This document shows, in pieces, positions 1 to 58,143 of a stretch of 64,000 nt of DNA. Positions within the stretch are counted from its first letter, which is position 1, and each line of letters opens with the position of its first letter. A model generated the notes under the pieces. The model did not search any database. It was not told the DNA's origin and saw only the letters and a program-made list of their open reading frames with translations. The translations under genes were made by a program, and so were the position numbers. The stretch comes from Paragordius varius (lineage: Eukaryota > Animalia > Nematomorpha), in NCBI GenBank assembly GCA_964247055.1, contig OZ176052.1, forward strand, positions 10,044,001-10,108,000, in the 5' to 3' direction.

Positions 1-3000
1 GTCCACAAAAATATTTTTTTGATTGTATTTTTTTGCCCACGGTATGAGACTGTAAAAATTCGAGAAAGATTTTTCGTATTGCCTGTTAAAAGGCAAAAAT
101 TTTAGTCAAGCGTTTCTTTGATGATAGATGCTGAGTAAGGAGTATCTATCATATGCATAGCATGTTAAAAGATATATGGATATTAATACATTATTTATCC
201 TCATCTATATATTTATAAAAATGGAAAAGGCTGGCTTTGTGATCTGGTACAGGAAAACCGGTAGACCCAATCAAATCCAAATATCGAAAAAATATAATCA
301 TTAATAAATGTCCCGACAATAGCTTCGCCCTTTTTTTGAAATAGGCCCCCAGTTCGGGCCCACCCCGTATGAAAAACGGGTTTTTTTTGAAAACAGAAGT
401 CCACAAAATCGTGTTTTTGAGACAATATTCCGGAGAACGTGTTGGACCATTCAATTTCAAATATGAATTTTGTTTACTTATTTTCGATTGCGCCGAACAT
501 AGTCGAGCCACTTTTTTGATTTAGGCCCTCTTTTTACCCGCTACCCCCGTAAAATGCAATTTTTTTCAAAAAAAAATAAAGTCCACAAAAATATTTTTTT
601 GATTGTATTTTTTTGCCCACGGTATGAGACTGTAAAAATTCGAGAAAGATTTTTCGTATTGCCTGTTAAAAGGCAAAAATTTTAGTCAAGCGTTTCTTTG
701 ATGATAGATGCTGAGTAAGGAGTATCTATCATATGCATAGCATGTTAAAAGATATATGGATATCAATACATTATTTATCCTCATCTATATATTTATAAAA
801 ATAAAGGCTGGCTTTGTGATCTGGTACAGGAAAACCGGTAGACCCAATCAAATCCAAATATCGAAAAAATATAATCATTAATAAATGTCCCGACAATAGC
901 TTCGCCCTTTTTTTGAAATAGGCCCCCAGTTCGGGCCCACCCCGTATGAAAAACGGGTTTTTTTTGAAAACAGAAGTCCACAAAATCGTGTTTTTGAGAC
1001 AATATTCCGGAGAACGTGTTGGACCATTCAATTTCAAATATGAATTTTGTTTACTTATTTTCGATTGCGCCGAACATAGTCGAGCCACTTTTTTGATTTA
1101 GGCCCTCTTTTTACCCGCTCCCCCCGTAAAATGCCATTTTTTTCAAAAAACAAAGTCCACAAAAATAATTTTCTAAATCGATTTTTCGCCCTAGGTATGA
1201 GACCGTAAAAATTCAATAAAGATTCCACGTATTGCCTGTTAAAAGGCAAAAATTTTAGTCCACCGTTTATTTGATGATAGCTGCTGGGTAAGGAGCTACC
1301 CGCTAAAAACTGATTTTTCATATAATTTTGTGAACTGTTTCCGGAAAACCGGTGATTCCAATCTCCAAATATCGAAAAAATATAATCATTAATGAATGCC
1401 CCGACAATAGCTTCGCCCTTTTTTGGAATTAGGTCCCCAGTTTGGGCCCACCCCGTGTGAAAAATGGGTTAAGTCAATTTTTTGGAGAACGTGTTGGACC
1501 ATTCAATTTCAAATATGATTTTTGTTTACTTATTTTCGATTGCGCCGAACATAGTCGAGTCACTTTTTTGATTTAGGCCCTCTTTTTACCCGCTCCCCCC
1601 GTAAAATGCCATTTTTTTCAAAAAAGTCCACAAAAATATTTTTTTGATTGTATTTTTTTGCCCACGGTATGAGACTGTAAAAATTCGAGAAAGATTTTTC
1701 GTTTTGCCTGTTAAAAGGCAAAAATTTTAGTCAAGCGTTTCTTTGATGATAGATGCTGAGTAAGGAGTATCTATCATATGCATAGCATGTTAAAAGATAT
1801 ATGGATATTAATACATTATTTATCCTCATCTATATATTTATAAAAATGGAAAAGGCTGGCTTTGTGATCTGGTACAGGAAAACCGGTAGACCCAATCAAA
1901 TCCAAATATCGAAAAAATATAATCATTAATAAATGTCCCGACAATAGCTTCGCCCTTTTTTTGAAATAGGCCCCCAGTTCGGGCCCACCCCGTATGAAAA
2001 ACGGGTTTTTTTTGAAAACAGAAGTCCACAAAATCGTGTTTTTGAGACAATATTCCGGAGAACGTGTTGGACCATTCAATTTCAAATATGAATTTTGTTT
2101 ACTTATTTTCGATTGCGCCGAACATAGTCGAGCCACTTTTTTGATTTAGGCCCTCTTTTTACCCGCTACCCCCGTAAAATGCAATTTTTTTCAAAAAAAA
2201 ATAAAGTCCACAAAAATATTTTTTTGATTGTATTTTTTTGCCCACGGTATGAGACTGTAAAAATTCGAGAAAGATTTTTCGTATTGCCTGTTAAAAGGCA
2301 AAAATTTTAGTCAAGCGTTTCTTTGATGATAGATGCTGAGTAAGGAGTATCTATCATATGCATAGCATGTTAAAAGATATATGGATATCAATACATTATT
2401 TATCCTCATCTATATATTTATAAAAATAAAGGCTGGCTTTGTGATCTGGTACAGGAAAACCGGTAGACCCAATCAAATCCAAATATCGAAAAAATATAAT
2501 CATTAATAAATGTCCCGACAATAGCTTCGCCCTTTTTTTGAAATAGGCCCCCAGTTCGGGCCCACCCCGTATGAAAAACGGGTTTTTTTTGAAAACAGAA
2601 GTCCACAAAATCGTGTTTTTGAGACAATATTCCGGAGAACGTGTTGGACCATTCAATTTCAAATATGAATTTTGTTTACTTATTTTCGATTGCGCCGAAC
2701 ATAGTCGAGCCACTTTTTTGATTTAGGCCCTCTTTTTACCCGCTCCCCCCGTAAAATGCCATTTTTTTCAAAAAACAAAGTCCACAAAAATAATTTTCTA
2801 AATCGATTTTTCGCCCTAGGTATGAGACCGTAAAAATTCAATAAAGATTCCACGTATTGCCTGTTAAAAGGCAAAAATTTTAGTCCACCGTTTATTTGAT
2901 GATAGCTGCTGGGTAAGGAGCTACCCGCTAAAAACTGATTTTTCATATAATTTTGTGAACTGTTTCCGGAAAACCGGTGATTCCAATCTCCAAATATCGA

Positions 3001-6000
3001 AAAAATATAATCATTAATGAATGCCCCGACAATAGCTTCGCCCTTTTTTGGAATTAGGTCCCCAGTTTGGGCCCACCCCGTGTGAAAAATGGGTTAAGTC
3101 AATTTTTTGGAGAACGTGTTGGACCATTCAATTTCAAATATGATTTTTGTTTACTTATTTTCGATTGCGCCGAACATAGTCGAGTCACTTTTTTGATTTA
3201 GGCCCTCTTTTTACCCGCTCCCCCCGTAAAATGCCATTTTTTTCAAAAAAGTCCACAAAAATATTTTTTTGATTGTATTTTTTTGCCCACGGTATGAGAC
3301 TGTAAAAATTCGAGAAAGATTTTTCGTTTTGCCTGTTAAAAGGCAAAAATTTTAGTCAAGCGTTTCTTTGATGATAGATGCTGAGTAAGGAGTATCTATC
3401 ATATGCATAGCATGTTAAAAGATATATGGATATTAATACATTATTTATCCTCATCTATATATTTATAAAAATGGAAAAGGCTGGCTTTGTGATCTGGTAC
3501 AGGAAAACCGGTAGACCCAATCAAATCCAAATATCGAAAAAATATAATCATTAATAAATGTCCCGACAATAGCTTCGCCCTTTTTTTGAAATAGGCCCCC
3601 AGTTCGGGCCCACCCCGTATGAAAAACGGGTTTTTTTTGAAAACAGAAGTCCACAAAATCGTGTTTTTGAGACAATATTCCGGAGAACGTGTTGGACCAT
3701 TCAATTTCAAATATGAATTTTGTTTACTTATTTTCGATTGCGCCGAACATAGTCGAGCCACTTTTTTGATTTAGGCCCTCTTTTTACCCGCTCCCCCCGT
3801 AAAATGCCATTTTTTTCAAAAAAAAATAAAGTCCACAAAAATATTTTTTTGATTGTATTTTTTTGCCCACGGTATGAGACTGTAAAAATTCGAGAAAGAT
3901 TTTTCGTATTGCCTGTTAAAAGGCAAAAATTTTAGTCAAGCGTTTCTTTGATGATAGATGCTGAGTAAGGAGTATCTATCATATGCATAGCATGTTAAAA
4001 GATATATGGATATTAATACATTATTTATCCTCATCTATATATTTATAAAAATGGAAAAGGCTGGCTTTGTGATCTGGTACAGGAAAACCGGTAGACCCAA
4101 TCAAATCCAAATATCGAAAAAATATAATCATTAATAAATGTCCCGACAATAGCTTCGCCCTTTTTTTGAAATAGGCCCCCAGTTCGGGCCCACCCCGTAT
4201 GAAAAACGGGTTTTTTTTGAAAACATAAGTCCACAAAATCGTGTTTTTGAGACAATATTCCGGAGAACGTGTTGGACCATTCAATTTCAAATATGAATTT
4301 TGTTTACTTATTTTCGATTGCGCCGAACATAGTCGAGCCACTTTTTTGATTTAGGCCCTCTTTTTACCCGCTACCCCCGTAAAATGCAATTTTTTTCAAA
4401 AAAAAATAAAGTCCACAAAAATATTTTTTTGATTGTATTGTTTTGCCCACGGTATGAGACTGTAAAAATTCGAGAAAGATTTTTCGTATTGCCTGTTAAA
4501 AGGCAAAAATTTTAGTCAAGCGTTTCTTTGATGATAGATGCTGAGTAAGGAGTACTTTTTACCCGCTACCCCCGTAAAATGCCATTTTTTTCAAAAAAAA
4601 AACAAAGTCCACAAAAATATTTTTTTGATTGTATTTTTTTGCCCACGGTATGAGACTGTAAAAATTCGAGAAAGATTTTTCGTATTGCCTGTTAAAAGGC
4701 AAAAATTTTAGTCAAGCGTTTCTTTGATGATAGATGCTGAGTAAGGAGTATCTATCATATGCATAGCATGTTAAAAGATATATGGATATCAATACATTAT
4801 TTATCCTCATCTATATATTTATAAAAATGGAAAAGGCTGGCTTTGTGATCTGGTACAGGAAAACCGGTAGACCCAATCAAATCCAAATATCGAAAAAATA
4901 TAATCATTAATAAATGTCCCGACAATAGCTTCGCCCTTTTTTTGAAATAGGCCCCCAGTTCGGGCCCACCCCGTATGAAAAACGGGTTTTTTTTGAAAAC
5001 ATAAGTCCACAAAATCGTGTTTTTGAGACAATATTCCGGAGAACGTGTTGGACCATTCAATTTCAAATATGAATTTTGTTTACTTATTTTCGATTGCGCC
5101 GAACATAGTCGAGCCACTTTTTTGATTTAGGCCCTCTTTTTACCCGCTACCCCCGTAAAATGCAATTTTTTTCAAAAAAAAATAAAGTCCACAAAAATAT
5201 TTTTTTGATTGTATTTTTTTGCCCACGGTATGAGACTGTAAAAATTCGAGAAAGATTTTTCGTATTGCCTGTTAAAAGGCAAAAATTTTAGTCCACCGTT
5301 TATTTGATGATAGCTGCTGGGTAAGGAGCTACCCGCTAAAAACTGATTTTTCATATAATTTTGTGAACTGTTTCCGGAAAACCGGTGATTCCAATCTCCA
5401 AATATCGAAAAAATATAATCATTAATGAATGCCCCGACAATAGCTTCGCCCTTTTTTGGAATTAGGTCCCCAGTTTGGGCCCACCCCGTGTGAAAAATGG
5501 GTTAAGTCAATTTTTTGGAGAACGTGTTGGACCATTCAATTTCAAATATGATTTTTGTTTACTTATTTTCGATTGCGCCGAACATAGTCGAGTCACTTTT
5601 TTGATTTAGGCCCTCTTTTTACCCGCTCCCCCCGTAAAATGCCATTTTTTTCAAAAAAGTCCACAAAAATATTTTTTTGATTGTATTTTTTTGCCCACGG
5701 TATGAAACTGTAAAAATTCGAGAAAGATTTTTCGTTTTGCCTGTTAAAAGGCAAAAATTTTAGTCAAGCGTTTCTTTGATGATAGATGCTGAGTAAGGAG
5801 TATCTATCATATGCATAGCATGTTAAAAGATATATGGATATTAATACATTATTTATCCTCATCTATATATTTATAAAAATGGAAAAGGCTGGCTTTGTGA
5901 TCTGGTACAGGAAAACCGGTAGACCCAATCAAATCCAAATATCGAAAAAATATAATCATTAATAAATGTCCCGACAATAGCTTCGCCCTTTTTTTGAAAT

Positions 6001-9000
6001 AGGCCCCCAGTTCGGGCCCACCCCGTATGAAAAACGGGTTTTTTTTGAAAACAGAAGTCCACAAAATCGTGTTTTTGAGACAATATTCCGGAGAACGTGT
6101 TGGACCATTCAATTTCAAATATGAATTTTGTTTACTTATTTTCGATTGCGCCGAACATAGTCGAGCCACTTTTTTGATTTTGGCCCTCTTTTTACCCGCT
6201 CCCCCCGTAAAATGCCATTTTTTTCAAAAAAAAATAAAGTCCACAAAAATATTTTTTTGATTGTATTTTTTTGCCCACGGTATGAGACTGTAAAAATTCG
6301 AGAAAGATTTTTCGTATTGCCTGTTAAAAGGCAAAAATTTTAGTCAAGCGTTTCTTTGATGATAGATGCTGAGTAAGGAGTATCTATCATATGCATAGCA
6401 TGTTAAAAGATATATGGATATTAATACATTATTTATCCTCATCTATATATTTATAAAAATGGAAAAGGCTGGCTTTGTGATCTGGTACAGGAAAACCGGT
6501 AGACCCAATCAAATCCAAATATCGAAAAAATATAATCATTAATAAATGTCCCGACAATAGCTTCGCCCTTTTTTTGAAATAGGCCCCCAGTTCGGGCCCA
6601 CCCCGTATGAAAAACGGGTTTTTTTTGAAAACATAAGTCCACAAAATCGTGTTTTTGAGACAATATTCCGGAGAACGTGTTGGACCATTCAATTTCAAAT
6701 ATGAATTTTGTTTACTTATTTTCGATTGCGCCGAACATAGTCGAGCCACTTTTTTGATTTAGGCCCTCTTTTTACCCGCTACCCCCGTAAAATGCAATTT
6801 TTTTCAAAAAAAAATAAAGTCCACAAAAATATTTTTTTGATTGTATTTTTTTGCCCACGGTATGAGACTGTAAAAATTCGAGAAAGATTTTTCGTATTGC
6901 CTGTTAAAAGGCAAAAATTTTAGTCAAGCGTTTCTTTGATGATAGATGCTGAGTAAGGAGTATCTATCATATGCATAGCATGTTAAAAGATATATGGATA
7001 TTAATACATTATTTATCCTCATCTATATATTTATAAAAATGGAAAAGGCTGGCTTTGTGATCTGGTACAGGAAAACCGGTAGACCCAATCAAATCCAAAT
7101 ATCGAAAAAATATAATCATTAATAAATGTCCCGACAATAGCTTCGCCCTTTTTTTGAAATAGGCCCCCAGTTCGGGCCCACCCCGTATGAAAAACGGGTT
7201 TTTTTTGAAAACATAAGTCCACAAAATCGTGTTTTTGAGACAATATTCCGGAGAACGTGTTGGACCATTCAATTTCAAATATGAATTTTGTTTACTTATT
7301 TTCGATTGCGCCGAACATAGTCGAGCCACTTTTTTGATTTAGGCCCTCTTTTTACCCGCTACCCCCGTAAAATGCAATTTTTTTCAAAAAAAAATAAAGT
7401 CCACAAAAATATTTTTTTGATTGTATTTTTTTGCCCACGGTATGAGACTGTAAAAATTCGAGAAAGATTTTTCGTATTGCCTGTTAAAAGGCAAAAATTT
7501 TAGTCAAGCGTTTCTTTGATGATAGATGCTGAGTAAGGAGTACTTTTTACCCGCTACCCCCGTAAAATGCCATTTTTTTCAAAAAAAAAACAAAGGGTGG
7601 AGTGAATAAAAAAAAGGAAACCCTTTAAGTGTTTCCTATGCTCACTTTTTCAAAGAAAGGGTTTCCTTATAATTCATATAAAAAACACATCTGATTAACT
7701 CTCGAGTTTCCTTAAACCATGCCTAAAACCGATATAAATGTACCTAAAGAAAAATTGAGACTTCTTCTTGCAAAGTAACTTAATATTTAATATTTTAGAT
7801 ATCCCATAGTTTTTAATAAATCTATGGTCCCGTATATTGTAATTCAAAAAAAGAAGCTTATAAAAATCTACAAAATGATTTGTTGACAGAAACAAAGAAT
7901 TATTATGATATAGATCAGATATAGCGATAGATATGAAAATTGCAATCAAAAAAATATGATTTAAATAATACAGGAAACGTTGTCATAAAAGATCGCACGA
8001 AATCGGAGGAAATATTCCTAAATTCTTAAGATCGCACAGAATCGGAAGAATTTTTAAATTATTATGACAATCTAATTCACATTTTATATTAAATAATAAA
8101 TAGATTAAAGTTTATTTATACATTTTTTTATGATAAAATAAAAGTTTGTATACAAATTTTCATTTAGCAAGAATAACTAAGAAACTGATTGACTTAATAT
8201 TTTTTGCATATACTAAGAAATGAGATTTGTTAGTTAATCGAAATCAGGAAAAGTATTTTGTCATAAAGTTTATTGTTTGATTATTAAATCGTAGATTTTG
8301 TTTCATAGATAATTGATTCCCTTATATCTTTTTTTGTTTCTTATCTAAGATCGTTGAGCAAACATTTAGTTTCTACGCTGTATTCCAAATATACTAGAAA
8401 AATCTAAAATGTATAAAAATAACTTTGAAAATTGAAATTTTAACTTATCGAATCTAATATCAAAACCGTATTAGCTCTAATTGCCTTGTTTGATCCTCTA
8501 CTATCGATTGTTATAAAATTTATAAATATATAAGGATGGTATTTAGCATCCTAAAAAATATGTAGGGTTTCCTTTAATAAATTTTTTTATTCACATGAAA
8601 ACAAGTGTTTCCTTAAAAATCTAATGTTAATTTTTTTAGGGTTTCCTTAGCTTTTTATTCACTCCAAATTAAGGAATCTCTTAAAAAAGCTAAGGAAAGA
8701 GTGTTTCCTTTTTTTTATTCACTCCACCCAAAGTCCACAAAAATATTTTTTTGATTGTATTTTTTTGCCCACGGTATGAGACTGTAAAAATTCGAGAAAG
8801 ATTTTTCGTATTGCCTGTTAAAAGGCAAAAATTTTAGTCAAGCGTTTCTTTGATGATAGATGCTGAGTAAGGAGTATCTATCATATGCATAGCATGTTAA
8901 AAGATATATGGATATCAATACATTATTTATCCTCATCTATATATTTATAAAAATGGAAAAGGCTGGCTTTGTGATCTGGTACAGGAAAACCGGTAGACCC

Positions 9001-11114
9001 AATCAAATCCAAATATCGAAAAAATATAATCATTAATAAATGTCCCGACAATAGCTTCGCCCTTTTTTTGAAATAGGCCCCCAGTTCGGGCCCACCCCGT
9101 ATGAAAAACGGGTTTTTTTTGAAAACAGAAGTCCACAAAATCGTGTTTTTGAGACAATATTCCGGAGAACGTGTTGGACCATTCAATTTCAAATATGAAT
9201 TTTGTTTACTTATTTTCGATTGCGCCGAACATAGTCGAGCGACTTTTTTGATTTAGGCCCTCTTTTTACCCGCTCCCCCCGTAAAATGCCATTTTTTTCA
9301 AAAAACAAAGTCCACAAAAATAATTTTCTAAATCGATTTTTCGCCCTAGGTATGAGACCGTAAAAATTCAATAAAGATTCCACGTATTGCCTGTTAAAAG
9401 GCAAAAATTTTAGTCCACCGTTTATTTGATGATAGCTGCTGGGTAAGGAGCTACCCGCTAAAAACTGATTTTTCATATAATTTTGTGAACTGTTTCCGGA
9501 AAACCGGTGATTCCAATCTCCAAATATCGAAAAAATATAATCATTAATGAATGCCCCGACAATAGCTTCGCCCTTTTTTGGAATTAGGTCCCCAGTTTGG
9601 GCCCACCCCGTGTGAAAAATGGGTTAAGTCAATTTTTTGGAGAACGTGTTGGACCATTCAATTTCAAATATGATTTTTGTTTACTTATTTTCGATTGCGC
9701 CGAACATAGTCGAGTCACTTTTTTGATTTAGGCCCTCTTTTTACCTCCCCCCGTAAAATGCCATTTTTTTCAAAAAAGTCCACAAAAATATTTTTTTGAT
9801 TGTATTTTTTTGCCCACGGTATGAGACTGTAAAAATTCGAGAAAGATTTTTCGTTTTGCCTGTTAAAAGGCAAAAATTTTAGTCAAGCGTTTCTTTGATG
9901 ATAGATGCTGAGTAAGGAGTATCTATCATATGCATAGCATGTTAAAAGATATATGGATATTAATACATTATTTATCCTCATCTATATATTTATAAAAATG
10001 GAAAAGGCTGGCTTTGTGATCTGGTACAGGAAAACCGGTAGACCCAATCAAATCCAAATATCGAAAAAATATAATCATTAATAAATGTCCCGACAATAGC
10101 TTCGCCCTTTTTTTGAAATAGGCCCCCAGTTCGGGCCCACCCCGTATGAAAAACGGGTTTTTTTTGAAAACAGAAGTCCACAAAATCGTGTTTTTGAGAC
10201 AATATTCCGGAGAACGTGTTGGACCATTCAATTTCAAATATGAATTTTGTTTACTTATTTTCGATTGCGCCGAACATAGTCGAGCCACTTTTTTGATTTA
10301 GGCCCTCTTTTTACCCGCTCCCCCCGTAAAATGCCATTTTTTTCAAAAAACAAAGTCCACAAAAATAATTTTCTAAATCGATTTTTCGCCCTAGGTATAA
10401 GACCGTAAAAATTCAATAAAGATTCCACGTATTCCCTGTTAAAATGCAAAAATTTTAGTCAAGCGTTTCTATGATGATAGCTGCTGGGTAAGGAGCTACC
10501 CGCTAAAAACTGATTTTTCATTTAACTTAGTGATCTGTTTCCGGAAAAGCGGTGAACCCAATCAAATCCAAATATCGAAAAAATATAATCATTAATGAAT
10601 GCCCCGACAATAGCTTCGCCCTTTTTTGGAATTAGGTCCCCAGTTCGGGCCCACCCCGTGTGAAAAATGGGTTAAGTCAATTTTTTGGAGAACGTGTTGG
10701 ACCATTTAATTTCAAATATGAATTTTGTTTACTTATTTTTGATCGCGCTGAACATAGTCGAGTCACTTTTTTGATTTAGGCCCTCTTTTTACCCGCTACC
10801 CCCGTAAAATGCCATTTTTTTCAAAAAAAAACAAAGTCCACAAAAATAATTTTTCAATTGTATTTTTTTGCCCAAGGTATGAAACTGTAAAAATTCGAGA
10901 AGGTTTTTTCGTATTACCTGTTAAAAGGCAAAAATTTTAGTCAAGCGTTTCTTTGATGATAGATGCTGAGTAAGGAGTATCTATCATATGTATAGCATGT
11001 TAAAAGATATATGGATTATAACATTATTTATGGTAATCTATATATTTATAAAAATGGAAAATGCTGGCTTTGTGATCTGGTACAGGAAAACCGGTAGACC
11101 CATTCAAATCCAAA
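1..11114. repeat. Tandem satellite array, ~20 monomers (~580-bp type A, ~470-bp type B, 196-bp deletion monomer), with a 1625-bp higher-order repeat; left end lies outside the window
   Basis: Monomer start GTCCACAAAAATA recurs at 1, 581, 1155, 1626, ... 3251, 3831, 4411, 4607, 5187, 5659, 6239, 6819, 7399, 8733, 9310, 9778, 10355, 10836. Identical spurious ORFs recur 1625 bp apart (191/1816/3441). Confidence 0.98.
7595..8729. mobile_element. Non-autonomous TIR element (PIF/Harbinger-like MITE, 1135 bp) inserted in the satellite
   Basis: Perfect 27-bp TIRs GGGTGGAGTGAATAAAAAAAAGGAAAC (7595-7621 / 8703-8729). 3-bp TSD AAA (7592-7594, 8730-8732), shown by comparison with the empty monomer CAAAGTCC at 4603. 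Subterminal GTTTCCT repeats; no transposase ORF. Confidence 0.88.
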
Positions 11115-11188
11115 CTTCGAACCCCCCCCCCCCCCCAGAAGTTCAAAGGACTTCCTCGGGCTGCGTAGCAGCACGAGATTCACGCTAG
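11115..11188 (+). mobile_element. Helitron-type 3' terminus (poly-C, GC-rich hairpin, CTAG|T) closing the satellite array
   Basis: Hairpin CTCG-G-GCTGC-GTA-GCAGC-A-CGAG (11155-11177), 7-nt spacer, CTAG at 11185-11188 followed by T, directly after the last truncated monomer and a C15 run. Confidence 0.72.
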
Positions 11189-12874: not shown

Positions 12875-13904
12875 ATGTACGGCGTTAATTTGGAAAATTA
12901 TATTGATAGTTTGGATACATTGCCATCAGAAATGAGGAAGAAATTCAATAATATGCGAGATTTAGATAAAAAGGTTATTGAAAATTTAAAAACCATTGAC
13001 GTCGCTAGTCAAACATATTTGAACGATTATCATAAATTAGCTTCTACAGAACGTGCAGAATTATACAAAAATATAAATAAGAAATATAAAAAATGCAAAG
13101 ATATGTCAGATACAAAAATTCAATTGGCAGTTCAAACATATGAAATGATTGATAAACATATTCGTCGATTAGATGCTGAACTGGCGAAATTTGAAGCCAA
13201 GTTAAAGCACAAAGCATCTCTAGCATTAAATTCTTCTATGCCGCAACAAACTAATACAGATGGTGCCTGTCGAAATTTATTTTCCAACAAATCGGTCACT
13301 CTTAGCAAAGATCAAAAAAGAAAAGGTTTGACAATCTATATTTGTTTAACATATTGTGGTTGTCAAAATATGTGTATAAAGTATTTTTAAATACGTAATA
13401 ATTAACTATCTAATCTAAAACTATTATTCACACTTATATCAATATTTGTTAATATATTCTGGACATATATGCTTTTCAGGTAAAGGCAAAGCACAAAAGG
13501 CAACATCGAGTTCTTACAATGATGCGTCTACTCCTGCGCCCACTCCTGTCCCTGGTTTGGATGATCAATCGTTGGAATTGTTAATGCCTACCCTTTCCAC
13601 TTTTTCGCATTCTTCCCAAATTTTGGATATGCCTGTTGATCCAAATGAACCCACATATTGTGTTTGTCACCAAGTGTCTTACGGTGAAATGATTGGTTGT
13701 GATAACCCAGATTGTCCTGTTGAATGGTTTCATTTTGGGTGTGTTGGCCTGACCCATAAACCTAAAGGCAAATGGTTTTGCCCCAATTGTAATTCCATAT
13801 TTTCGGGTGGGACAGGAAATAGAAACAATACTTTAATCCCTTTAAATAACGCAAATTCTAATACTATAACAGCTAATGCTGCCAAACATCGAAAAACTTC
13901 ATGA
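12875..13904 (+). CDS. ING4: Inhibitor of growth protein, ING4/ING5-like (PHD finger), ~291 aa; join(12875..13325,13480..13904)
   Basis: N-terminal [19 protein letters not shown] helical domain and [45 protein letters not shown]...[10 protein letters not shown] 154-nt phase-1 GT-AG intron joins the two ORFs in frame. ING4 vs ING5 is not resolvable here. Confidence 0.95.
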
Positions 13905-14935: not shown

Positions 14936-20809
<5,874 letters not shown>

Positions 20810-22817: not shown

Positions 22818-25402
22818 TTAATCATCCAAATCTTCTTGATATATTATGACCATCGGGTTGGGATTGTTACTGTCGGAATCGTCGGAACTAAAATTTTGAG
22901 AATGTTACATGATAGCTTTTGTATGTAAAAATAAGCATATAATTAACTCTCTTTTTATAATAATATATTAGAAGTATTTAGAGAACCCAAATTTAAGCAT
23001 AAGGAACAACACAAATACATAAACGGAAGCGATTTTAAAACGGCATTACAATGGTTTACAAAAATTAAATTTTGTTTGAATTCGATATTCTCATTATAAA
23101 TTTTCGGTTTTTGATCATTTTTAAAAAATCCAATTTTCTTATTGGTTTTATTAAAAAATTTAGATAAATAATTATCCATAAATTTGGCATATATAAAATT
23201 GTCAACTATTTCTCCATACTTTAAATATTTTTACAACCCCTTAATACTAAAATGAAAAGGGTGCTATGTCACCCATTACGAGATTGTTAGATCAAGCGAA
23301 TACCAAATAATAGATTTTTCGTATTTGAAATAATTCAGATTTTATAAATACTTGTAATCAGTTTTTTTGGTATCTTCATTATTTTCATTTGATTCCGTTT
23401 TAGTTTGATTGTTGTTTCCTTGATTGTATGGTGGTGATTTTATGTCACCGAGGTCAAAAAATGAGTAATCTAAACTATCCGATGTTACTGGACAAAAATT
23501 ATCTATTGCATTTGGTAGGGGCGGATTAATTGCAACGGTACCAGGATAATTATTTTGGTTTACATCTTTGTTTTTGGCCACGACATTGGTTATTTTTGAA
23601 TCGGGAGTATTAACTACAAATATAAATTTATATAATTTTTAGTTTCTATATGTTGCGAACGAAAAATCTAAAATATCAAATTTTCTTCATTAGTTGATAA
23701 TGTATTTGACAGTATTTTAAGAAATTTAAACGGGTAAAATTATTTTGCATAATTTAGTTGCAACATATATTTTAAATTCAAAAAGACCCGTTTGAAATAG
23801 TTCTCAAATTTAAAAAAATATTATTCCATTTTTTGCAGTCTCAAAATAGTTTGGCAAAAGAGAAAATGCAGATCTAAAACAATTTTTAACCTAAATAAAG
23901 ATTATTTAGTCCAAAAACAGAAACATAATTTATTTTTTTAAGTAAAATTCATATATTCCAATGTACCGTTTTTAAAAAAAAATTGGTTTCTAATAATTTT
24001 GTAAATTATAAAGTTGTCAAGTTAATGTTATAAATTAATTAAAACGGGTTCCAAAAATTATGTAATTAGTTTTAAAAATATTTAATATACAATTTACAAT
24101 AAAAATTCACCCTTCAATTCAAATTCACTCAAGCAAATCAATTTTTACAATTTAAATTTATCTTTGAACAGTTTAAATTCAGCTGAAATTATGTGTTTTT
24201 GGGCTTGTAGAGCTCATTATTAATATGAAATATATCTTTATGGCTTAGTTTATTAATTTTTCAGTATTAATTTAATTTTTAACAAAATTTCCCTTTAATA
24301 TATGTAATTTTTATTATTCAATTATATATAATTTATGAATTGTTCAAGAGTAAATTTGAAATGTAAATGGTTATCATGAAAATAACAAAAACCATTACCA
24401 TGTGATGATTGGTTATTGGGGGTCAAATCATTTTTGAGAAGAGTATTTTGTGAAATTTTTGGTGTTTCGGGTAAATAAAACCTAATATATAAACAAAAAT
24501 ATGATTAAAATACTAATGATAAATTTGATGTATGGCGAGATAGTTTACTAAAATGATCGCTCGAAAGCGCAATTTATATAACCTAATCCTTATCACTATT
24601 GGTAAATGTAATAAATCAATAAAGTTTATTAATCTTACAATAATGCATAAAAAGTATTTTATCATAAAAGCTTTATTAAAATAACATTTGATTGCACCAG
24701 AGTTTGAAACCAAACTAAGATATATCCATCATCATCATTATATAAATATTTTTATCATAATTAATGGCATATTTCATTCTCCCAAAAGTGTATAATTCGG
24801 GCTCTATTGTCAAATGTTATAGGTCAAATTTAAAAAAGATTGTAACACATTTTTATATGCATAAAGTATTATTATAAAAGTAGAAATGAATTAATGATAT
24901 GCATTTTATAAAAAAAAGCAAAGCCATATGATATGTACATTATAAATATATACCCATGATCGGTTTCAGTAGATTGAGGATGTAATTTTAATTCTTCAAG
25001 AACAATATGGATATTTTCCGAATTCGTAGCGAGTTGTGACAAAAGACTTTCCCGCTAGTATATTTGTAATATATATATATATATATATATAAGTATATAT
25101 ATATATATATATATATATTAGCTTATTGAGCGTATAAGACTAACATTGATTGCTATTAAATATAAAAATTGTTGAAGACAGCATTAATAAATAAGTTTTT
25201 TTAATGTTTCTTAAACATATTATTTAAAATTATTTTATAGTGAAACCCCTTTTGTAAGTTGACCTTAATCAATTTATATTTTTTAATCATTTTTATAACG
25301 ATGTCCGATTTATTGGTTTATGTTGCTGTCCCAAAATATTTATATAAAAATATATTTTTTTATACTATACTTAAAAGGGTTTTACATGCTAAATAGAATC
25401 AT

Positions 25403-25441
<39 letters not shown>

Positions 25442-26649
25442 GCAAACCTCAAGCTCTAAAAATGGAAGATTAAAAAATTTATGAATATATTTCAGGCCAT
25501 AATTGTTTTTCATTGAACTTTCGATAACCTTGATATGGGTTGCGGCAATCAATTGATTTCTATAATAAATATATAGATTTAATGTATCTAAAAAAGAGAA
25601 GGCAAAAAAAGCTAATCTAAGTTATTTATCAATAGGTCAACAATATCAAACTTTAAAAAATATTTTAAACCGTTAGGCCTTAAATAAAAATCTCATCAAT
25701 TACTATATATATAATTTTCATTCATTATTATTTTTAAAGTTTATCTTATCGGTCTACATTTTAATAGTGTTTAAAAAATGCAGTATTTGGTTAAAAGCAG
25801 TTAAGCTCCAAAACAACCTATATTTGTTATTATACGATTTTAAGTATTTTGTGTTTATTAGAGTGACATTTTATGTTCAATTGTCATCGATTAAAAAAAT
25901 AAAATAAATGTATTACTGTATTTTTTTAAAATTTATCTTTAAAAAATGCAAAAGTATACTTGGATTTGATTGTATTTATCATACTATAAATATCATCCAA
26001 ACTAATGACTTGTTTATGTTCTAAATCTCGTTTATTAGCAAGAATTAATATGGGTATAGAGCATGTCAATTTTTCAATGTCGTTTAATATATAATCCAAA
26101 GTCCTGCATAATTATTAAATACTATACCATTTTCTGGTAACATCCAAAACGTATAAGATACCGTGTGTTCCTTTATGAACATCAATATTGTTGGAGTCTA
26201 AAATTCCAAAATCTAAATTATTCTAAAAATAAAAATCGGTCAACTTTGTTATTATTAAATTTTATGCCATTGTCTGTTATTTTAAGACCGTTGTCAACAA
26301 TATCCCATATTTCAACTTTGACAACAGTATTTGTGTTTTTAAAATTCCAATTAATATTTGCAATCTAAATTATAAAAAAATTTAACTTGAATCTGAAGAG
26401 TTGGATTATATTTATCGTGAAAATCCATTCCTTGCAACCTGTTAAATAACGATGTTTTCCCAACATTTTTATCACCTTTTATAATAATCTTCACTAAAAA
26501 TATTAAATAAATATACTATTATATGACACCCCATTTGAATATTTATCTTGCAATTCTTTTTCCAATGATTTTATGTTATTGTTGTTTAATGTGTTTGTTA
26601 AAGGAGGCGAGATAGCTTGAATTAATATTTTTTTAAAAGTTTCAAGCAT
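22818..26649 (-). CDS. RABL6: Rab-like protein 6 (RBEL1/PARF), ~408 aa; exons 26649-26517, 26493-26387, 26364-26245, 26222-26128, 26103-25960, 25559-25448, 25054-24954, 24481-24399, 23613-23352, 22887-22818
   Basis: Spliced translation: MLETFKK...[28 protein letters not shown]...[12 protein letters not shown]...[24 protein letters not shown]...ILANKRD...[33 protein letters not shown] and C-terminal [13 protein letters not shown], all matching RABL6 blocks. Summed exons are 1227 nt, in frame. The 3' low-complexity exons are less certain. Confidence 0.92.
25067..25120. repeat. (TA)n microsatellite (others near 21200, 25407-25438, 38411-38455, 50761-50810, 58115-58160, 62433-62462)
   Basis: Direct reading of TA runs. 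Confidence 0.95.
26104..26516 (-). other. Four consecutive micro-introns in RABL6: 26494-26516 (23 nt), 26365-26386 (22), 26223-26244 (22), 26104-26127 (24)
   Basis: GTATATTTATTTAATATTTTTAG, GTTAAATTTTTTTATAATTTAG, GTTGACCGATTTTTATTTTTAG, GTATAGTATTTAATAATTATGCAG; each is needed to keep the GTPase domain in frame and colinear. Confidence 0.9.
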
Positions 26650-40888: not shown

Positions 40889-41974
40889 ATGCTACCCAAT
40901 AATAACCATAATAATAAGGGACAAAAACAACCAACTGATAAGAATGACACATCCGATAGTAAACACGTTAAGCGGCCCATGAATGCTTTCATGGTATGGA
41001 GCCGAGGTCGCCGTAAAGTCATTGCAACGCAACATCCTAAAATGCATAATTCTGAGATTAGCAAAAAACTTGGATGCGAATGGAAACTTTTGTCGGAGGT
41101 GCTGAAGAGACCATACATTGATGAAGCTAAAAGGCTTAGATTTAAACACATGAAAGAACATCCAAATTACCGTTATAAACCCAAACGAAAAGTTATAGGC
41201 TCATGTTTATTAACGACTGCTTCGGTTCAGCCAAATACGTCCTCTATCCCTAATCTAATCCTCAATAAGCAGCATCCTCCAAAAGATGTTTGTGAAGATA
41301 ATTTTCAATTCAAGGGTAGAAACATTATTTCAAATGTGGATAGAATGCGGATTTGTGAACAAATACCTAATATCGATTTTGATGCAAAGGTCTCAACTTC
41401 AAAATTGAATGACGCTTTATTCAGTCCGAGCAATGACATTCCCAAATCTAATTTGGGGCATAGTAGAAATTCGAACCTAATTAACAAAAATAATTTTACT
41501 GCACCAACATTTTCTGATATTTTTGACTCTAACCCATCGCAATTTTCTATAATGCAAACTTACCAATTCCAATATGACAGCGAGGCTTCATTATTGGCTT
41601 TTAATTCTAACCATAATGGGATTTGGAAAAATAACTATTCTAGTATTAATTTTTCTAAAACAAAGTCATATTTTCACACACCAGATATAAATACCCAACC
41701 ACCACCAAAACCGAGCTCTAGAGATTTATTTAAATCAGATTCAACATTGCAAATACAAAACCAACCCTTTGTATCAAATTGTCAAAATTATATACCATTG
41801 TGGTATTTTCAATATATTCATCGGTTGATTACCCTTCCGACTTTTTTGGTTGCTCCTCCGTATGAAATTAAAACCATGTTTATGGGTAATGAAAAAAACG
41901 TTGATATGTCGAATACTTTTGATAATTATTCCACATTCAATCAACTCTGTAATAGCTCTTTTTTACCCAGTTAA
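40889..41974 (+). CDS. SoxB: SoxB-group HMG-box transcription factor, intronless, 361 aa
   Basis: HMG box [76 protein letters not shown] in one ORF. Confidence 0.95.
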
Positions 41975-54920: not shown

Positions 54921-57900
54921 ATGGAATTTGACTTTACAGATATTGCAGATAATCAATTAAAAGAAGTAAATTTTTATTTATTTTTTAGTTCACATATAAC
55001 CAAGAAAAAATTTTGGTTTATCGTAAAAATGGAAGGTTTTACGCTACATCTTCTAAATGCACGCATTATGGGGCGCCTCTCATAAATGGTGTTCATAATG
55101 GGGATACTGTAAGATGTCCATGGCACGGCGCTTGTTTTAATCTCAAAACGGGAGACATTGAAGATTTTCCGGGATTGGATAATTTGACCTGTTATAAAGT
55201 TGTAGCAATTAATTATTGTAGGTTGAAAAAGTGCGAGACAACATATATAGCATAAGCAAACCCGACAATTTAATAAACAATTTTGTTCCTAAGACAAAAA
55301 ACCATTTTTATATTTTGGGTGGTGGACCGTCTGGTTTAGAATGTGCAGAAACTTTACGAAAGCAGGTAAAAATCGGTTGATTTAATTTTACCTTTTTTTA
55401 ATATATAATAACAAATTTGGCATTCTTATTCGTTAAAGTTATAAATTGCCCACTTTTCATAATTAGTAAAAATCTTAATTAAATTTGCCTATAAAATAAT
55501 TTTTAGTGGTAAATTCATAAGTAGATCATAACTACTACGAGTAATTTACCATATAATTAACCTTTTAGAAAGTTAAAAATTGCAAATATCGCTCACATTA
55601 GATTTATATTTTTGAACTGAAATTATAAAACAAATATCGTCTGTAGTTTAAAAATATATTTTTTTGAGTCCCTATTTTATATACAGAAAAATGCGCTTTA
55701 ATGCTGAATTTTAGATATTTTTGTTCTTTTGACACAAACGCTTGATTGCGAAAATGTTAGGTAATAAAGGACTTTTACTAAAATTGAATCATAGCTAAAA
55801 TATTTAACCTTCATAGAGATTTTTAAACTTAAGAAACATATTCAAAGCATATTTAATAGTTAATTTATAAGTAATTTCTTATTTTTTATACAATACTTGA
55901 TAATCATATATGAAATTTGAAATTAATATCAGGCCAAAATTCTTTACAACTGCTTTTTAGGAGATCACGATCATTTATTCTCTTAATTTTATTTCATATT
56001 GTACAAATACTACTATTTTATCATTCAAAAATTTGTAGCTTTTAATCTCCGCCCAATATATGGCAAATATTCAATTAGTTTGAATATCACTTTTCCCTCA
56101 AATAAATTTTATATAAACGCCCTTTTATAACCGGTTAAAATGGCGAATATAAAATTGAAACTATGTTTTTCAGATCAAAACAATTTTATTTCTACGAGTA
56201 AATTTTTACAAAAATTAAATTAAAAAATAAGAAATTTAAAATTTATTAAAAAAGTATTATATACCATATATAGAATTTTGATGGAAAAATAACCATATTG
56301 ACGAAAGATTGCAATCTACCTTATGATCGGCCGAAACTCAGTAAAACAATGGACTTGGATATAGCTAAAATTGTATTGCGAAACGAGGAATTTTATGTCA
56401 AACGCGGAATCGATATAAGAACAAATATGGCGGTTAAGAAAGTTGATTTTGACACAAAAACTATTTTTACCACTTCAGATCAACAACATAAAGTAAATCT
56501 CATTTTTTTCAATTATTGAGGTTATATTTTTTGAACGAAGATTTTTTTAACATATATGGCTTTGTTTATATTATTAATATGGTCCTATATTTAATCAATT
56601 TCAATGTAAGTCAGTAAGTTTTAGGATTTTAATAGAAATTTTAAATTTACCAAACAGTTAAAAGTAATGGATAAAAATTATTTTAGGGGAAATATCAGAC
56701 TTTTTAAATTAAGATTGTGGGTCTCTTCTCTAGAAATTGTGCAATCTGTTTTATTAAATATTTTTCTTACGTCCTATGATAAATAATAAAATACATGCAT
56801 GATCTATTAAAAACCCAAAACCTATCATTTTGTAAATCTAACATTTTTTGTTTTATTAATATATTTTCTTTAGTATGACAAACTTTACATTGCATTGGGG
56901 TCGAGTCCTATAATACCGAATGTACCTGGCATTAAACTTGGCAATATATTTTCCCTCCGCTCTTTGGCAGATGCTCAAAATATGTATCGGCATATTAAAG
57001 AGGACAAGGATGTTGTTATTATTGGGAGTTCTTTTATAGGTATGTAGTTGTATAAATTATTATTGTGACATTTTCATAATTTTATTTTATGCATAAATAA
57101 AAAAGAAATTTTGTAAAAAGATTTCATTAATCATAGATTAGGTAACTGAGATCTAGTTGTTTATATAAATATCTTAAAATTTTGACTATATATACCGGGG
57201 AATATAAATCAAATATTTCTTATTATAATATCAATTTTGCATCAGAATCTACGCTTATATCCCAAATTTAACATAAAAAATAATTTATATATGATATAAA
57301 TTTGTTATCTTTTTTTTGGTTAAACAAAAATATTATTATATCAATCCTAAAAAGTTAAACCATACAAATGAAATTTACTTTAACAGGAATGGAAATTGCT
57401 TCAATTATCAAAGGGAAAGCAAAAAGTATTACCGTTGTTACCAATACCAGTGTACCGTTTGAACGGGCGTTTGGGCTAAAGATTGGAACTTTTCTCAAAT
57501 CTCTACATGAATCTAATGGTATTAAATTTCAGACAAATACCTCACTTCAAGCATTTGAAGGCGATAACAGCAATTTGGTTCGACATGTCCTACTTGCTGA
57601 TGGATCAAAGTAATATGATATCATTTGAAAATGTTGATTATATATTTTACTGTAAAAAATATACAGTTTAGAGTCGGTTTTTTTTGAGGGGCATATGCTA
57701 TCAAAGGCATAAACATTTGCAGCTGACAGCTATGATAAAAAATTTTGGCAGTTTTTTTGTTGATTTATAGTATTTATAATTAATTTTACACTTTTTTTCT
57801 AACCTAATTGGTAAACCTACTTTTTCTGTTTTTAATCGATAAATTTATATTCAGAATTCCGTGTGACATTTGTATCCTGGGTCTCGGGGTTAGGCCTGTC

Positions 57901-58112
57901 AGCGCCCAATTGTTTAATGGGACGAAGCTTGCTCTAAATCAATTTGGGTGTATTGAAGTGAACGAGTTTATGGAAACATCCGTACCCAATGTTTATGCTG
58001 GTGGAGATACGGTTTCTTTCCCCCTGTATCTGACGGCTAATGATTTTGAATCTTTTAAATCTACACCATCTGGGAAATGGAATAAGGTATTTAATTTGTT
58101 TTTTAGTAATTT

Positions 58113-58143
<31 letters not shown>

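Follow-up and report, generated by a model that had tools for sequence, protein, structure and literature searches.

Four probable introns of 22 to 24 nt in a RABL6 orthologue of a hairworm-like genome

On the minus strand between 26649 and 25960 of the window, the 64-kb (64,000 nt) stretch of DNA analyzed here, a conserved GTPase domain is spread over short open stretches in shifting frames that are parted by four GT...AG segments. Are these segments introns of a working gene, or the marks of a broken one? The initial annotation had claimed that removal of four GT-AG segments of 22-24 nt leaves a continuous frame, and we obtained the same result with segments of 23, 22, 22 and 24 nt. Without them the reading is unbroken from the ATG at 26649 to 25960, contains no stop, and passes through junctions of phases 1, 0, 0 and 2 (Table 1). 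The annotation had also stated that no entry in the ORF track covers the domain; there is indeed no ORF of at least 60 aa, and the only fragments are of 47, 48 and 57 aa.

Frame continuity was assessed by translating windows of 20 residues across each junction. At every junction the called segment is the sole GT-AG segment that gives an open frame, or else the shortest of those that do. The window is AT-rich (22-35% GC), and GT...AG segments of 20-26 nt show no enrichment, with 9 observed against 12.4 +/- 4.0 in shuffled sequences, so that the dinucleotides alone prove nothing. The signal for the micro-introns is the restoration of the frame together with the orthologous position of the segments, not the dinucleotides.

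Table 1. Features of the RABL6 gene in window coordinates, with the lengths of corresponding features in Gordionus and Lingula.
Feature	Position	Strand	Length (nt)	Phase	Gordionus (nt)	Lingula (nt)	Remarks
Exon 1	26517..26649	-	133				ATG at 26649; ends in phase 1 in a Met codon; aligns with Gordionus RABL6 residues 1-49
Micro-intron 1	26494..26516	-	23	1	62	1464	GT-AG; splits Met codon after ..YN
Exon 2	26387..26493	-	107		107	107	P-loop GDKNVGKTS and switch I
Micro-intron 2	26365..26386	-	22	0	97	332	GT-AG; after conserved ..IQ; sole frame-restoring solution
Exon 3	26245..26364	-	120				G3 motif WDIVD
Micro-intron 3	26223..26244	-	22	0	49	1190	GT-AG; in the length-variable loop between G3 and G4
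Exon 4	26128..26222	-	95
Micro-intron 4	26104..26127	-	24	2	39	327	GT-AG; splits Trp codon of ..KW; sole solution
Exon 5	25960..26103	-	144		144		G4 motif NKRD; donor GT at 25959
Intron 5, ordinary	25560..25959	-	400	2	roughly 2.6 kb	252
Exon 6	25448..25559	-	112		112		37 residues; G5 (ESSMK) and RABL6-specific motif; 88% identical to Gordionus
Intron 6, ordinary	25055..25447	-	393	0			(AT)n microsatellite
Exon 7	24955..25054	-					67% identical to Gordionus
Middle part: intron(s) plus one or more exons of poor conservation	23614..24954	-					exon limits not found
Exon 9, approximate	23352..23613	-					..DNFCPV..LDYSFFD motif; from tblastn with Gordionus residues 399-423 and read splice sites
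Last exon	22818..22887	-					TAA at 22820-22818; 63% identity with the final 27 residues of Gordionus RABL6

RABL6 is the rab-like protein 6 of animals, also named Parf, RBEL1 or C9orf86. All protein searches were run exon by exon. Exon 2 matched the Pfam families Roc (1.7e-7; 31.9 bits, cut-off 27) and Ras (1.9e-5), and its GDKNVGKTS has the form GxxxxGK[ST] of the P-loop in Ras-superfamily G-domains. Exon 5 aligned with positions 93-138 of Pfam Ras at an E of 0.007, a weak match that lies under the cut-off of that family. With exon 6 alone we found 136 proteins at E<=1e-3 among 1.84 billion representative proteins, the best match (E 1e-11) being XP_065320437.1, the rab-like protein 6 of Gordionus sp. 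m RMFG-2023. For 8/10 of the exon 6 representatives that were looked up, either the representative or a member of its cluster bears the name rab-like protein 6, and the other two are without a descriptive name. Seven are so named themselves (Gordionus, Potamilus, Diadema, lemur, Lingula, Protopterus and Antedon), and the eighth clusters with an Argopecten protein of that name. In the PDB the exon 6 sequence matched nothing but designed repeat proteins, with E values of at least 0.01, and this route led to no relative of solved structure.

Searching the window by tblastn with 11 RABL6 orthologues gave colinear matches on exons 1-7, and most of the 11 also matched a C-terminal piece at 22892-22821 that carries the NPMV..QEDLDD motif. 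The Gordionus protein additionally matched 23533-23453. In the whole 110.6-Mb genome, Gordionus RABL6 found a sole match, at 10068956-10070649 of the contig, which corresponds to 24956-26649 of the window. Identity over the aligned exon residues is 61% with Gordionus (147/241), 50% with Lingula, 47% with Priapulus and 44% with lemur. The assignment of the domain to RABL6, first made in the initial annotation, is thus borne out by the exon 6 matches, by the tblastn search with 11 orthologues and by the single locus in the genome.

The motifs of the G-domain lead to the same family. GDKNVGKTS, WDIVD and NKRD, which the annotation had quoted, are all present (exons 2, 3 and 5, respectively), and WDIVD, NKRD and the ESSMK of exon 6 align with the WDVVD, NKKD/NHRD and ESSM[KR] of Gordionus and Lingula RABL6. 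A WD[IV]VD G3 motif that lacks the catalytic Gln, an NKxD-like G4 and an ESSM[KR] G5 are what we take to be the motifs defining RABL6. The helix motif that follows G5, ..GLKY.HKFFN.PFL.., is specific to the RABL6 family and is present in exon 6. The stretch from 26649 to 25960 had been described as the G-domain; G1 to G4 do lie inside it, but G5 and the last helix lie beyond it, in exon 6. At the C-terminus the acidic NPMV motif of RABL6 is present and prenylation cysteines are absent. This protein and Gordionus RABL6 share their G1, G3 (WDxVD), G4 and G5 motifs, the positions and phases of their introns, and the C-terminus, the short ..YQEDLDD ending at exactly the same residue in both; they differ in the loop between G3 and G4, which is about 10 residues shorter here. 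Judged by its sequence, the gene is a single RABL6 orthologue, and its nearest available relative is that of a horsehair worm (Gordionus), though not a close one.

To obtain intron positions, we mapped the RABL6 proteins of Gordionus and Lingula each onto its own genomic DNA. An exact look-up of Priapulus RABL6 gave no record, so the gene structures compared are those of Gordionus and Lingula. Micro-introns 1, 2 and 4 match introns of both animals exactly in position, and micro-intron 3 lies in the same loop and has the same phase, its exact codon equivalence not being fixable because the loop has indels. In alignments with Gordionus, Lingula, Priapulus and lemur, the exon ends abut consecutive residues or flank one split codon at 3/4 junctions, and the fourth junction falls in the length-variable loop that holds intron 3. 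Exons 2, 5 and 6 are equally long here and in Gordionus, as is exon 2 in Lingula (Table 1). The four segments had been called introns from the start, and they behave as spliceosomal introns at ancestral positions, in the same phase as in Gordionus and Lingula.

The ordinary introns are conserved as well. The positions of introns 5 and 6 are common to all three animals. Intron 6 has (AT)n/(TATA)n microsatellites at both ends, at 25385-25447 and at about 25070-25139, and the intron before the last exon is an ordinary one of about 464 nt. Gordionus RABL6, too, has its shortest introns at the front: the first four are far shorter than the later ones, which measure 0.2-7.4 kb. The shrinking therefore seems to predate the split of the two lineages, and in the present genome it would have reached the floor.

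Taken together, the locus is very probably an intact, single-copy RABL6 orthologue in which the first four introns are real, were inherited from the bilaterian ancestor and have shortened almost to the minimum known for animal introns; the later introns are ordinary. It is improbable that the introns, though real, are spliced inefficiently or under regulation, with the retained RNA being degraded, and that they serve as a dial for expression and are not neutral relics. If any single micro-intron is retained, the frame runs into a stop within 4-9 codons (after 4 for micro-intron 1). Even micro-intron 4, whose length is a multiple of 3 and keeps the frame, has two in-frame TAA inside. This pattern is in agreement with such a dial, as is the published remark that Microsporidia splice very short introns inefficiently (PMC13644364). 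However, the micro-introns are very low in GC, and the same stops are expected by chance in DNA of 9-27% GC. Still a shade less probable is a dead RABL6 copy, in which the 22-24-nt segments would not be introns but small insertions or duplications by which the frame was broken. Two window ORFs that were looked up exactly (the 57-aa exon 5 ORF and a SOX ORF) gave no match, hence no RNA or DNA contigs of the same species, and no credible exon 8 emerged in the middle of the gene at 24954-23614, whether exons were enumerated under phase constraints or sought by comparison with Gordionus residues 276-365. Against a dead copy, all four segments are GT...AG and occupy intron sites of Gordionus and Lingula with matching phase, the exons are free of stops and frameshifts and keep the G1, G3, G4, G5 and C-terminal motifs, this is the sole RABL6 locus of the genome, and a Rab18-like gene is split by the same kind of segment.

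In an intact gene with real introns, the four micro-introns would be removed by the ordinary U2-type spliceosome. The splicing signals would then probably be reduced to a bare GT and AG together with one or two A located 5-11 nt ahead of the AG. Each of the eight micro-introns read (four in RABL6, four in the Rab18-like gene) has one or two A at 5-11 nt before the AG, and the assignment of the branch point rests on these eight. A similar pattern of A before AG has been described for the introns of myxozoans and dicyemids (PMC13644364).

The canonical P-loop and NKxD motif are kept, and the product would be a working GTP-binding protein. As in other RABL6 proteins, the DxxGQ of Ras-like GTPases is replaced by WDxVD, and a cysteine tail is lacking. 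Because of the replacement of DxxGQ and the missing cysteine tail, what is known of the family leads us to expect a GTP-binding protein that hydrolyzes slowly and is not lipidated.

The initial annotation had ranked this locus as the strongest single one for the micro-intron class, a rank it does not keep, as the same genome has a Rab18-like GTPase gene with four or five such introns. Located at 5361113-5361602 of contig 5, that gene can be read only if four introns of 21-22 nt are removed, and it has a probable fifth intron of 21 nt that is in frame and lacks a stop. As read from the DNA, the micro-intron class is general in this genome, and the RABL6 locus is a good case of it but not a unique one.

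Other features of the window include a tandem array at 1-11188, in which each unit carries a near-identical minus-strand ORF of 105-106 aa, an ING-type PHD-finger gene in two ORFs (12875-13904), a protein kinase in pieces (15050-18888), an intronless SOX-type HMG-box ORF of 361 aa (40889-41974) and an AIFM3-like piece (57808-58137). The SOX-type ORF and the ING gene point to an animal with the standard code. A ciliate source such as Paramecium, which the low GC and the introns of 22-24 nt might suggest, is rejected on this gene content, on the 393-464-nt introns of the RABL6 gene, on its standard TAA at the residue where Gordionus RABL6 also ends, on the hairworm protein as nearest orthologue, and on the use of TGA in the mitochondrial COX1. 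Contig 44 of the genome is mitochondrial, and its COX1 at 7480-8820 has 6 in-frame TGA codons that are read through as in invertebrate mitochondria; split at these codons, COX1 yields no piece longer than 140 aa. On nuclear contig 1, at 10612280-10612597, a broken piece of COX1 interrupted by six stops probably represents mitochondrial DNA copied into the nucleus.

According to a survey of 51 animal genomes (PMC13644364, September 2026), introns of less than 30 nt have been published for just two groups of animals. The survey itself met them in myxobolid Myxozoa and Dicyema japonicum and in no other animal; the authors predicted that more would be found, and hairworms or Nematomorpha are not mentioned. 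In the literature collection searched, no paper has both 'Nematomorpha' and 'short introns', and the word 'intron' is absent from the Gordionus genome report. The introns of Myxozoa and Dicyema resemble those described here in their size (20-27 nt), in signals cut down to GT(a/t) and AG with a few A shortly before the AG, in sharing their positions with longer introns elsewhere among animals, and in their occurrence in a parasitic lineage. They differ in that Myxozoa and Dicyema have compact genomes with a median intron of 22-27 nt, whereas here tiny introns stand beside introns of 400 nt in one gene, in a repeat-rich 110-Mb genome of an ecdysozoan, hairworm-like lineage. The introns of Paramecium and Nyctotherus, of about 25 nt (PMC5014332), share the size class and the premature stops that follow retention; in these ciliates practically all introns are tiny and the genetic code is different, in contrast to the two intron size classes and the standard code seen here.

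We tentatively suggest, at somewhat less than even confidence, that this genome represents a third animal lineage, independent of the other two, with introns of less than 30 nt, and that such introns make up a size class of their own next to the ordinary ones. The RABL6 series from 327-1464 nt in Lingula through 39-97 nt in Gordionus to 22-24 nt here would then represent stepwise shrinking, and gene sets built with the usual minimum intron lengths would under-call genes in this species.

The initial annotation had proposed that pipelines with default minimum intron sizes could miss or break such genes and might in this way inflate the apparent gene loss of the lineage. In a six-frame Pfam Roc scan of the genome, exon 2 is the only matching exon of the RABL6 locus (29.9 bits; cut-off 27), and ORF lists and six-frame domain scans leave one exon of 35 residues of the RABL6 G-domain clearly visible. 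The full-length RABL6 protein of this species is absent from the protein collection, which is weak evidence since the collection may omit records from the species' own genome. The Gordionus orthologue, whose introns are at least 39 nt long, has a correct RefSeq model. As BUSCO completeness in Gordionus is 71.6% even with RABL6 introns of this length, low BUSCO scores in the group cannot rest mainly on introns of less than 30 nt, which speaks against a large effect.

The RABL6 gene itself is ordinary. Gene finders or read aligners whose minimum intron length is set above about 20 nt would break it. With four consecutive introns of less than 30 nt, each anchored to a longer intron in two other phyla, the locus offers a clean test case for a further animal lineage with introns of this size.
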